This document shows positions 2,793-49,446 of a DNA stretch of 64,000 nt, one piece after another. The notes under the pieces are model-generated. The model was not told the origin of the DNA. It saw only the letters and a list, made by a program, of their open reading frames with translations, and searched no databases. Each line of letters starts with the position of its first letter. Positions within the stretch are counted from its first letter, which is position 1. The translations under genes were made by a program, and so were the position numbers. Source of the stretch: Chrysemys picta bellii (Eukaryota); assembly GCF_011386835.1 (NCBI RefSeq), contig NC_088794.1, positions 104,594,001 to 104,658,000 of the forward strand. The letters run 5' to 3'.

Positions 2793-3012
2793 TTATTAGA
2801 CTCTTTTGAAAGTTTTTACCATTTCAGGCTAGCCCTATGGTTAATTCTCTTGAAAAAGCAGAATCTTTCAAAAATTGTTCTGCTTTTTAAAGGTCTTTGC
2901 TTTCCTAAAAGAAACTTTTGCTGAATCATTTAAGATTCAGGCCCTACCTACAAGAACTTTACTTATGTAGGTGAGTCAAGTAGGTGCATGAATCTTTGCA
3001 GTGTCAGGGCCT

Positions 3013-45836: not shown

Positions 45837-47321
45837 GTATTCGTTGCTACCTGAGTTCAAACCTGAGTTTACATAGGATGAATTGCATTTATTAGAATTG
45901 AACTTTTCACATATTTTTACTGCATTGTTCTTTTTTTTCTTTTACCCGCCATAATCCTAGAGAAGAAGCACACAAGTGTAAGGTATTTATGCAGTGATAG
46001 AGAGTAAAATGTCTGTTGCCCTTTTTTATTGTTTTGTTTTTAATGTGATCCATATCTCGGTGATATTTTGCCCTTCTGCTTCCTCAGTAAAAAAAGCCTG
46101 TGTGTTTCAAGCCTAAAGTAAGGAAGGATTTGATCTGGATGACTAACACTGAATTCCTGTCCCCAGGAAATCTTAGCCGTAAACTCACTTCTTTCCCATC
46201 GTATTTATTTAAAGAACGTTAGTGGGAAAGGAGCGGTACAAGATCATTTTATTTAACCCAGCAGCACCGAACTCATTATCGTCCCAGCCTCTTCTGCCCC
46301 CCTCCCCCCTCCACCCAAACAAGAATAAGAACAGCAGAACCACAACATCACGGATCGCAAAAACAAAGACAACAAATTGCAACTCATAGTGTGTGGATTA
46401 TTTATATAGCTATTTCATGTATACATATCTGTACATGGCCTACTTTTTTTTTCGGCTGAAAACAAACGCGGTGAAAAGAAGAAAAAACCAGACAACAAGA
46501 AGTGCCATACGTTGATGTTCAAAACAAACACCTTCAAGGAAGGAGCATTTCCCAGGGAGAAAGAATGGCGGGGAACATTTCCGATTGAAGTGAAACTTTA
46601 AAGTGGCAATGAGACGCAGAGAATGAAATTAAGAAGAGAGAAGGTTACAGGCAAATCCTTACAACGTCCATTATTTTCAGTCTTATCTCCCCCCACCCCC
46701 TCCACACACACCTTGTTTTTATCTCCTCCCCTCCCCCATCCATCATTTTAACTCACACATTTCGGAGATTAACAAACAAGAGAGTAATGGCCCACACGGC
46801 TGCGAGTGTCAAGTGCACCATAATGGGGTGGAAGTAGCCGCGGCTCGTTTCTTCCCCGAAAGGCCGATGCGCAGGACCCCGAGTGCCCCTGGATCAAAAT
46901 CACGTCCTATTATCCCTGCTTTCCCGGGAGAGGACGGAGACGCAAGGCGGGTTGTAAGTAAATCTTTCCTTCTCTCCCCCAAAAGAAACAGCCCCCTGCG
47001 ACATAAAACCAACAGAGCAAAACAAACATACCCGGGGGGAGGTGAACAAACCATCACAAAACATGTTTCTAAAGCAAGCTCCAAAAAATATTTGTCCCTT
47101 AAAACTGATGTTTTCAGAAGTAAAAACTAATCAACACAAGGGGCCTAAAAGAATACACTGCGCCGAGAGACAGTGCCTGGCTCCGCAAAGTAGTACCTCT
47201 CCTCTCCCAGCCCCACCACCACCATTGCCTTCTCATGCCCCCTCCCCCAACCTCTCACCTTCCTCTCCTTAAAAAAAAAAGATAGAAGCAAACTTTAATC
47301 GCTTAGAAAAAATATTGAGGT

Positions 47322-47414
47322 ATAAAACTAAAATTATCCAAAACACTGGGATGGGGAAATGTTGGTTAAAGAGGAGTGGAGTGTAGGGGAGAGGGAAGAA
47401 TGAGAAAGGTAAGC
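47322..47414 (+). promoter_or_regulatory. Candidate TATA box plus short upstream exon ending at a 5' splice donor
   Basis: TATAAAA at 47322-47328; AAG|GTAAGC donor with GT at 47409-47410; no transcript evidence available. Confidence 0.35.
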
Positions 47415-47541
47415 CTCCGCGGCGATGCGTCCTTCCCCTGGTATCCCTGCGCGGCAGGGGGCTTTGGCGGTGCTTGGAGGGTGGGGGGAGCAGGAGGAGG
47501 AGAGAGAAGGGGTGAGGGAAGAGGAGGAGAGGGGAGTCCTG

Positions 47542-47670
47542 ATTGGCTGGCTCCGGGAGAGACGCTCCTGCACGCCGAGGTTTCTGATTGGGCGACCGGT
47601 GGAAAAGGTTAAACCAAAAATTTTTTTACAGCCCTAGCGTGTGTCTGTAGCTCTGAAATTAATTGTGGCT
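47542..47670 (+). promoter_or_regulatory. FOXG1 proximal promoter: two reverse CCAAT boxes and probable TSS
   Basis: CTGATTGG twice (ATTGG at 47542-47546 and 47587-47591); AATTGTGGCT at 47661 matches the start of the human FOXG1 mRNA as recalled. Confidence 0.6.
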
Positions 47671-47770
47671 AAAGCTGTCTCTATAGCTGCCTCTGCTGCT
47701 CTGCGCCGCCGACCCGCCCGGCTGCTGCTGTCCCCCCCGGGCTCTGGTGGAAGCGGGGGGACCGGGCACC

Positions 47771-47785
47771 ATGCAGGAGTGCTGA
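47771..47785 (+). promoter_or_regulatory. Short upstream ORF (MQEC*)
   Basis: GCACC-ATG-CAG-GAG-TGC-TGA with A at -3; the first of only two ATGs in the proximal leader. Confidence 0.6.
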
Positions 47786-47829
47786 ACGGGGCTGTGATTG
47801 TGCTCAGTGGCTCCGAGCGGGGATCGGGG

Positions 47830-47886
47830 TTTGTTTTTCCTCTTCCCTCCCCGGCGGCTCCTGTCCTTGCTACATGCCTTGCCAGC
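47830..47886 (+). promoter_or_regulatory. Candidate 3' splice acceptor in the FOXG1 leader
   Basis: Polypyrimidine tract 47830-47852, 66-nt AG-free zone (47818-47883), then CCAG|C at 47882-47886. Confidence 0.45.
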
Positions 47887-48065
47887 GCCTGCGACTGCGG
47901 TCCAACTGCACTGCTGCTGCTCCAGCCCGGGGTGCCGCCACCTCGCTGCCCAGCGCGGCCGCCGCCGCCACCTCTACCGCCACCGCCACCCCGAGCGCTG
48001 CTCACTGGGCCGCTGCAGCAACTTTCCCCCACAGACTAGTGTGTGATGTTGGACATGGGAGATAG
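47874..48065 (+). CDS. Out-of-frame overlapping upstream ORF, 63 aa ([12 protein letters not shown]...DVGHGR)
   Basis: ATG at 47874 (weak context, T at -3), 172 nt before the main ATG; stop TAG at 48063-48065 inside the FOXG1 CDS. Translation not demonstrated. Confidence 0.45.
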
Positions 48066-49446
48066 GAAGGAAGTGAAAATGCTGCCGAAATCCTCCTTTA
48101 GCATAAACAGCCTGGTGCCCGAAGCCGTCCAGAGCGACAACAACCACAACAGCCACAGCCACCACCACAACAGCCACCACCCCCACCACCACCACCATCA
48201 CCACCACCACCACCACCACCCGCAGCAGCAGCCCCAGCGAGCTGCCCCGGCCGAGGAGGAAGAGGAGAAGAGCCAGCTCCTCCTGCAGCCCCCCGTGGTG
48301 GCGGCGGCAGCTGCGGCTGCGGCCACCACCTCTGGCACCTTGGAGGTGGCCAAGGAGATCCTGCCGGGCAAGGGGGAGCCGGGCTCGGCCTCGGCAGCCG
48401 CAGAGCTGGAGGAGAAGGAGAAAGCGGCGGCGGCGGAGGAGAAGAAGGGGGCGGCGGAGGGGGGCAAGGAAGGGGAGAGCGGCAAGGAAGGGGAGAAGAA
48501 GAACGGCAAGTACGAGAAGCCCCCGTTCAGCTACAACGCGCTGATCATGATGGCCATCCGGCAGAGCCCCGAGAAGCGCCTCACCCTCAACGGCATCTAC
48601 GAGTTTATCATGAAGAACTTCCCCTACTACCGGGAGAATAAGCAGGGCTGGCAGAACTCCATCCGCCACAACCTCTCCCTCAATAAGTGCTTCGTCAAGG
48701 TGCCCCGCCACTACGACGACCCGGGCAAAGGGAACTACTGGATGTTGGACCCTTCCTCCGACGACGTCTTCATTGGGGGGACCACGGGCAAGCTCCGCAG
48801 GAGATCCACCACCTCCCGGGCCAAGCTGGCTTTCAAGCGAGGCGCTCGGCTCACCTCCACCGGACTGACATTCATGGATAGGGCTGGATCTTTGTATTGG
48901 CCTATGTCCCCTTTCCTCTCCCTGCACCACCCCCGGGCCAGCAGCACTTTGAGTTACAATGGGACCACGTCCGCCTACCCCAGCCACCCCATGCCCTACA
49001 GTTCAGTGTTGACTCAAAACTCTTTGGGAAACAACCACTCCTTTTCCACGTCTAATGGGTTAAGTGTTGATAGACTAGTCAATGGAGAGATACCTTATGC
49101 CACTCATCACCTCACAGCAGCAGCTCTGGCCGCCTCAGTGCCATGTGGCTTGTCAGTCCCCTGCTCTGGCACCTATTCCCTAAACCCTTGCTCTGTAAAC
49201 CTTCTAGCAGGACAGACAAGTTACTTTTTCCCCCATGTTCCTCACCCTTCAATGACTTCTCAAAGCAGCACTTCAATGACGGCCAGGGCAGCCTCCTCCT
49301 CCACGTCTCCACAGGCGCCCTCCACTCTCCCTTGTGAGTCCTTAAGACCTTCTTTGCCAAGTTTTACAACAGGACTTTCCGGGGGACTTTCTGATTATTT
49401 CACACATCAGAATCAGGGGTCTTCTTCAAACCCTTTAATACATTAA
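48046..49446 (+). CDS. FOXG1: Forkhead box protein G1 (BF-1/Qin), intronless CDS, 466 aa
   Basis: [12 protein letters not shown] start; eh1-like FSINSLV (48097-48117); His12 tract; forkhead domain [38 protein letters not shown]... (about 48517-48804); Groucho-binding YWPMSPF (48895-48915); C-terminus [10 protein letters not shown]. The true start is ATG 48046, not the track's GTG at 48043. Confidence 0.99.

Follow-up and report, generated by a model that had tools for sequence, protein, structure and literature searches.

Does the leader of FOXG1 carry a conserved upstream open reading frame (uORF), or a conserved upstream start codon whose reading frame is free to drift? FOXG1 is a dosage-sensitive forebrain transcription factor, and loss or gain of one copy causes human disease. 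We analysed a window of 64,000 nt from the turtle Chrysemys picta bellii (contig NC_088794.1, positions 104,594,001 to 104,658,000, forward strand) in which a first-pass annotation had noticed a 63-codon ORF running into the FOXG1 coding sequence. From a comparison with the human leader, that annotation had proposed that the ORF is conserved from turtle to human in start, stop, length and terminal peptide, acting either as a translational brake or as a micropeptide. The ORF itself, here called uORF2, is present in the ORF listing as a 63-aa ATG ORF on the forward strand, with the N- and C-terminal residues that had been quoted. Its surroundings are summarized in Table 1.

Table 1. Features of the FOXG1 leader and start region in the turtle window (positions are those of the window; frames are relative to FOXG1).
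Feature	Position	Strand	Description
Probable promoter/leader-start block	47542..47680	+	inverted CCAAT boxes at 47542-46 and 47587-91, followed by sequence that Xenopus and mammals share
uORF1 (MQEC*)	47771..47785	+	four codons, A at -3; spacer of 88 nt to uATG2
Nucleotide-conserved block round uATG2	47853..47909	+	~57 nt
uATG2	47874..47876	+	weak initiation context
uORF2	47874..48065	+	63 codons plus TAG, frame 2, 20-nt overlap with the CDS
Variable GC-rich middle of the leader	47910..48014	+	tri- and hexanucleotide repeats; stop-free in three frames; site of length changes
Stop-codon ring at the FOXG1 AUG	48037..48076	+	TAG 48037 in frame 0; TGA 48044 in frame 1 (UGAUG overlap); TAG 48063 in frame 2; TGA 48074 in frame 1
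FOXG1 CDS	48046..49446	+	466 aa; 98% identity with turtle FOXG1 proteins
FOXG1 in-frame AUGs	M1 48046, M4 48055, M12 48079	+	all three within 36 nt; M4 has the best context

Orthologous leaders were collected by a FOXG1 protein search followed by an exact-protein look-up of genomic DNA, and the FOXG1 ATG was placed at locus position 3001 everywhere. The resulting set of 11 sequences (four turtles, kiwi, ptarmigan, Rhineura, cat, musk deer, snub-nosed monkey and Xenopus laevis; Table 2) was aligned with MAFFT. The kiwi leader has a gap of Ns between uATG2 and the main AUG and was left out of the frame counts, which therefore cover 10 gap-free leaders. Rejected as leader sources were the long mammalian 'FOXG1' models P0028, P0059, P0066, P0076, P0086 and P0096 (519-756 aa), whose spurious N-terminal parts bear no relation to FOXG1 or its leader and look like gene-prediction artefacts of the GC-rich 5' region; of the long annotated proteins, the macaque P0031 alone was informative. 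The aligned leaders alternate conserved blocks with variable GC-rich or T-rich sequence, in the order promoter/leader-start block, uORF1, T-rich tract, uATG2 block, (GCC)n-type stretch and a block running into the FOXG1 AUG. Farther downstream, in the N-terminal region of FOXG1, a (CCA)n repeat encoding His-Gln-Pro (48133-48220; TRF period 3, 20.7 copies) differs in length among orthologues.

Table 2. Leaders sampled and the ORF opened at uATG2 in each (offsets and stops are counted from the FOXG1 ATG).
Species	Locus	uATG2 offset	Frame	ORF length	Stop
Chrysemys picta bellii (window)		-172	2	63 aa	+17
Mauremys mutica	L001	-172	2	63 aa	+17
Chelonia mydas	L002	-173	1	57 aa	TGA at -2 (UGAUG)
Caretta caretta, two haplotype assemblies	L008, L009	-176 (both)	1	58 aa	TGA at -2
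Apteryx rowi (kiwi)	L003				
Lagopus muta (ptarmigan)	L004	-127	2	48 aa	+17
Rhineura floridana (amphisbaenian)	L005	-198	0	63 aa	TAG at -9
Prionailurus viverrinus (cat)	L006	-176	1	58 aa	TGA at -2
Moschus berezovskii (musk deer)	L011	-181	2	66 aa	+17
Rhinopithecus roxellana (snub-nosed monkey)	L007	-175	2	64 aa	+17
Xenopus laevis	L010	-89	1	39 aa	+28

The part of the proposal that stood is the start codon: a homologous uATG2 occurs in 11 of the 11 tetrapod leaders, from Xenopus to mammals. The stop, the length and the terminal peptide did not stand. In all 10 gap-free leaders the ORF from uATG2 ends at -9, -2, +17 or +28, and never earlier, but it does so after anything from 39 to 66 codons and in three different frames. 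The first-pass annotation had reasoned that a frame preserved over amniote evolution would imply selection on the ORF, and had named frame shifts among orthologues as evidence to the contrary; what we find is that frames 0, 1 and 2 all occur. The sea turtles are in frame 1 through an insertion of 7 nt that two genera share and three assemblies show, and this shift, together with Rhineura and Xenopus, makes a solid set of exceptions to frame 2. Counted by lineage, the ratio of frames is about 4 : 3 : 2 and cannot be told from random use.

The appearance of a conserved ORF can be traced to the composition of the leader and to the stop codons at its end. Downstream of uATG2 the leader has a GC content of 72-90% in amniotes (54-56% in Xenopus) and is almost free of stops; in the turtle, no stop is found in any of the three forward frames between uATG2 and -9. 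Given a nearly stop-free leader and a ring of stops in all three frames, an ORF opened at uATG2 ends between -9 and +28 of the FOXG1 AUG whatever its frame, and any two species that happen to share a frame will therefore seem to conserve start, approximate length and terminal peptide all at once. The frame of uORF2 stays open in 63% of dinucleotide-preserving shuffles of the turtle leader, and under the same shuffling the open-frame share is 33-95% across ten species; openness is thus predicted by composition alone and gives no evidence of selection. The length of 63 codons in the turtle is unremarkable and not beyond chance expectation. Rhineura also has 63 codons, though in another frame and with another stop, so that this length evidently arises easily. 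Other ORFs overlap uORF2, with 132 and 82 aa in the remaining two forward frames and 132 aa on the reverse strand. As for the terminal peptide, the caveat already attached to it, that it is constrained by FOXG1 codons, proved correct: ...GHGR* is FOXG1 MLDMGDR read in the +2 frame, and the TAG that ends uORF2 (48063-48065) is built from FOXG1 codons D6-R7 (GAT AGG).

We did find a primate leader of the kind proposed for human. In the snub-nosed monkey Rhinopithecus (L007) a 64-codon ORF opens at the homologous ATG in the turtle's frame, beginning MTCQRPSLRSNCAAAG and ending RLGDAGHGR, which makes the 63 codons given for human plausible, give or take one. The terminal peptide common to turtle and primate is dictated by FOXG1 codons, and the agreement in frame and length is most likely coincidence. 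A FOXG1 protein of Macaca fascicularis (P0031, from UniRef) has a 58-residue in-frame extension from the homologous uATG, that is, in frame 0, starting MTCQRPSLRSNC. Relative to Rhinopithecus, this protein model implies a C-run with one C fewer, and the difference is either a real polymorphism or divergence among primates or an assembly error. Both the macaque frame 0 and the cat frame 1 depend on a single base in a run of Cs, and either may be an error of assembly.

Two side observations concern frame 0 of the leader. The frame-0 TAG at -9 is missing from ptarmigan and eutherians, in which N-terminal extensions of FOXG1 become possible. The v-Qin oncoprotein of avian sarcoma virus 31 (P0053 / P0051) carries eight residues, AAPSAQRV, before MLDMGDRK; this is the galliform leader read in frame 0 (ptarmigan locus L004:2976-3000), and the retroviral capture therefore took in 24 nt of leader.

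Selection on the encoded peptide was looked for in substitutions, in indels and in protein databases. Five close pairs of leaders, a small sample whose members are not independent, have 18/10/10 substitutions at codon positions 1/2/3. Synonymous/non-synonymous changes number 9/28 when these pairs are read in the uORF frame, and 16/23 and 9/28 when they are read in the off frames; the uORF frame thus does no better as coding sequence than the frames beside it. The prediction that indels would come in multiples of three held within families and among close relatives and failed between families, where lengths of 7, 1, 2, 5 and 10 nt, among others, occur. All of the indels between close relatives (3, 6 and 9 nt) lie inside the repeat-rich GC stretch of 47910..48014, one of them being a clear (CTG) run; TRF reports only one array there, a period-6 CCGCCA of 5.3 copies at 47959-47990. 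Repeat slippage by threes probably produced these multiple-of-three indels.

At the peptide level, turtles, kiwi and eutherians resemble one another over the first 12 uORF codons, and five of the 10 assemblies use frame 2, with 48-66 codons. Between turtle and mammals, on the other hand, the middle of the peptide cannot be aligned, and only 62-73% of aligned positions are in a common reading phase. The best pairwise alignment with Rhineura has a 1-nt insertion after codon 4 (gap placement is uncertain in such GC-rich sequence), so that similar nucleotides would there be read in another phase. A search of 5.8 billion proteins with the 63-aa peptide gave no hit at E <= 10, though for a query this short and of such low complexity the test is weak. 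With frame shifts, no coding signature and no peptide homologue, the micropeptide with an MxCQRxxLRSNC motif is left unsupported.

Conservation around uATG2 has instead the outline of a nucleotide block. Its tetrapod-invariant core is ~15 nt long (T.CT.CATG.C.T.C) and includes a T at -3 of uATG2 that is invariant in all 11 sequences; in amniotes the conservation spreads over ~21 nt upstream, outside the ORF, and 36 nt downstream. Within this block uATG2 is conserved no more strongly than its immediate neighbour bases, and past it, over 47910..48014, invariant columns amount to 10% in amniotes. We found no covarying RNA structure in the block (RNAalifold gave -5.4 kcal/mol, to which the covariation term, +0.38, adds nothing). 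Of 100 shuffles of the 451-nt leader, 98 fold better than the leader itself (z = +1.7), and Rfam gave no match at E <= 1. What the alignment shows to be conserved is an upstream AUG within a block of ~57 nt, and not the ORF as a coding unit.

The block 47542..47680 is probably the FOXG1 core promoter together with the start of transcription and of the leader; the conserved sequence 3' of its CCAAT boxes reads AAAGGTTAAACC...TTTTTTTACAG...GAAATTAATTG. Contig sets of small size (54-195 million letters, where the DNA runs have ~2,000 million; only X12 is recorded as RNA and the rest are guessed to be so) carry three organism labels and hold 0.9-1.0 of the sampled sequence words in 47650-47900, compared with ~0.5 over 47300-48300. 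In these sets 47650-47900 is contiguous with the genome across both uATG1 and uATG2. The RNA-like sets fit a probable unspliced leader that starts at ~47640-47660, just past the CCAAT boxes and a TATA-like T/A run, and contains uATG1 and uATG2. We also noted, 5' of the promoter block, a consensus-like splice donor, AAG|GTAAGC, at 47400-47415 (junction 47408/47409). Inside the uATG2 block there is a CAG at 47884-47886.

Upstream of the uATG2 block, uATG1 has a homologue in every sauropsid sampled and in Xenopus (there ATGAAGTAG, encoding MK*), and has become AAG in all three eutherian leaders (cat, musk deer and snub-nosed monkey). Initiation contexts along the leader are graded. That of uATG1, with A at -3, is strong, and that of uATG2, with T at -3 and C or A at +4, is weak; the first FOXG1 AUG is intermediate (G at -3), and AUG4, with G at both -3 and +4, is best.

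We propose that uATG2 may serve as a weak-context, leaky attenuator of FOXG1 translation that works independently of the peptide, a reading to which we give an even chance. A minority of scanning ribosomes would start at the weak uAUG2 (U at -3); these would pass over FOXG1 AUG1 and AUG4 and be lost to FOXG1 synthesis, and the majority would leak past uAUG2 to AUG1 or AUG4. Whichever the frame, the uAUG2 ORF would bring its ribosomes to or beyond the FOXG1 AUG. Both the initiation at uAUG2 and the resulting lower FOXG1 output are inferred. Since uATG2 is invariant in tetrapods and its ORF reaches or passes the FOXG1 AUG in every version, a brake is still plausible, and a varying frame with no coding signature is what is expected of a sequence-independent uORF. 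A single conserved mechanism is hard to square with outcomes that depend on the frame, namely bypass, overlap through UGAUG, a stop at -9 or, in the macaque model, an extension. The weak context of uATG2 may make the effect small. The wider claim, that uAUG2 (with uORF1 in non-mammals) would have been a frame-independent brake helping to set FOXG1 dose for ~350 million years, with the stop ring ensuring bypass, we consider rather unlikely.

The alternative that survives best takes the conserved block for an element acting at the nucleotide level, such as a 3' splice site, a promoter-proximal DNA site or a site for an RNA-binding protein, in which the ATG is incidental and the long ORF a by-product of GC richness. 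We regard this as a serious possibility, somewhat short of even. The conservation that reaches ~21 nt upstream of uATG2 would fit such an element equally well, being symmetric about uATG2 and extending outside the ORF, and the element would also suit a uORF that lacks a coding signature and Rhineura nucleotides that, in the best pairwise alignment, are similar past codon 4 yet phase-shifted. A 3' splice site would consist of a pyrimidine tract plus CAG and would serve transcripts with an upstream exon. A T-rich/CT-rich tract does lie 5' of the block, most species, Xenopus included, have an AG opposite the CAG in the alignment, and the donor at 47408/47409 is a candidate partner; but the CAG position reads CGG in Chelonia mydas and CAAG in Rhineura, and the RNA-like contig sets run contiguously with the genome across the candidate acceptor, so that an unspliced leader probably exists. 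An RNA element would have to do without covarying structure, folding beyond shuffles or an Rfam match. Moreover, in an unspliced leader even an incidental ATG would meet scanning ribosomes.

A second alternative is a special case of the attenuator, a delayed-reinitiation switch. Leaders of the ATF4/ATF5 type have two uORFs and work by delayed reinitiation, and the ATF4 layout is similar to that of the turtle FOXG1 leader. Here uORF1 would let the 40S subunit resume scanning; with abundant ternary complex it would reinitiate at uORF2 and FOXG1 would be missed, whereas eIF2-alpha phosphorylation would cause uORF2 to be bypassed and the FOXG1 AUG to be reached. The turtle geometry suits this, with a 4-codon uORF1 (A at -3), an 88-nt spacer and a 63-codon out-of-frame overlapping uORF2, and uATG1 is kept in the sampled sauropsids and Xenopus. 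We nevertheless think the switch improbable, given the AAG in place of uATG1 in the three eutherian leaders, a spacer that varies from 78 to 200 nt with additional uATGs within it in ptarmigan and Xenopus, and a uORF2 that has no CDS overlap in Chelonia, Caretta, cat and Rhineura (frames 1 and 0). FOXG1 is not known to be a stress-induced gene. Finally, a translated micropeptide of ~63 residues held in frame since the amniote ancestor is very improbable, being largely refuted by the use of three frames across lineages, of which the sea turtle shift is the robust case.

If the leaky attenuator is the right reading, it would belong to a familiar class. The uAUG is the most conserved triplet of 5'UTRs, and conserved uORF starts are enriched in genes intolerant of loss of function (PMC11057154). 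In the full-text library searched, no paper describes a uORF, an oORF or an N-terminal extension of FOXG1; the gene does not occur in the available, possibly incomplete supplement text of a set of 7,264 human Ribo-seq ORFs (PMC10032668) or in the main text of a human-brain Ribo-seq preprint. Conserved uAUGs and uORFs/oORFs are thus known in general, and the FOXG1 case was not found described.

An upstream AUG that has not changed since the tetrapod ancestor makes a cheaply testable candidate for post-transcriptional control of FOXG1 dose. Oligonucleotides that mask uORFs are an established route to more protein from a remaining allele (reviewed in PMC12881687). Should the brake be real, masking or mutating uAUG2 would be predicted to raise FOXG1 from the intact allele, which would give a lead for FOXG1 haploinsufficiency. 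The negative lesson is that a GC-rich stop-free leader, repeat slippage and the codons of the main ORF can together mimic, in a comparison of just two species, an ORF conserved down to its length and terminal peptide.

Three kinds of known system offer comparisons. FOXG1 resembles the uORFs with conserved peptides or micropeptides in that the start codon and the ~12 codons after it are similar across amniotes; it differs from them in the drift of frame and peptide, in the lack of a synonymous excess, in conservation that lies upstream of the ATG, and in Rhineura, where similarity persists in a different reading phase in the best alignment. With the ATF4/ATF5 leaders the turtle shares a short 5' uORF in good context, a spacer of ~90 nt and an ORF of ~60 codons overlapping the main start, whereas FOXG1 lacks uORF1 in eutherians and has a uORF2 that opens in a weak context and varies in frame.

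The third comparison is with attenuators of the oORF class, defined in PMC11057154; one of them, the oORF of STN1, is reported to attenuate translation (PMC6089452). Taking an oORF to have no in-frame stop before the main AUG and then to stop out of frame within the CDS, we find one in the window turtle, Mauremys, Lagopus, Moschus, Rhinopithecus and Xenopus, and none in Chelonia, Caretta, cat and Rhineura. FOXG1 is thus unlike these attenuators in that its overlap is not conserved, being replaced elsewhere by an end at -9, by UGAUG or by the extension of the macaque model, and in that its uAUG has a weak context. It is like them in having a leader uAUG without an in-frame stop before the main AUG and, in the turtle, termination out of frame within the CDS, in the dosage sensitivity of the gene downstream, and in a peptide whose sequence appears irrelevant.
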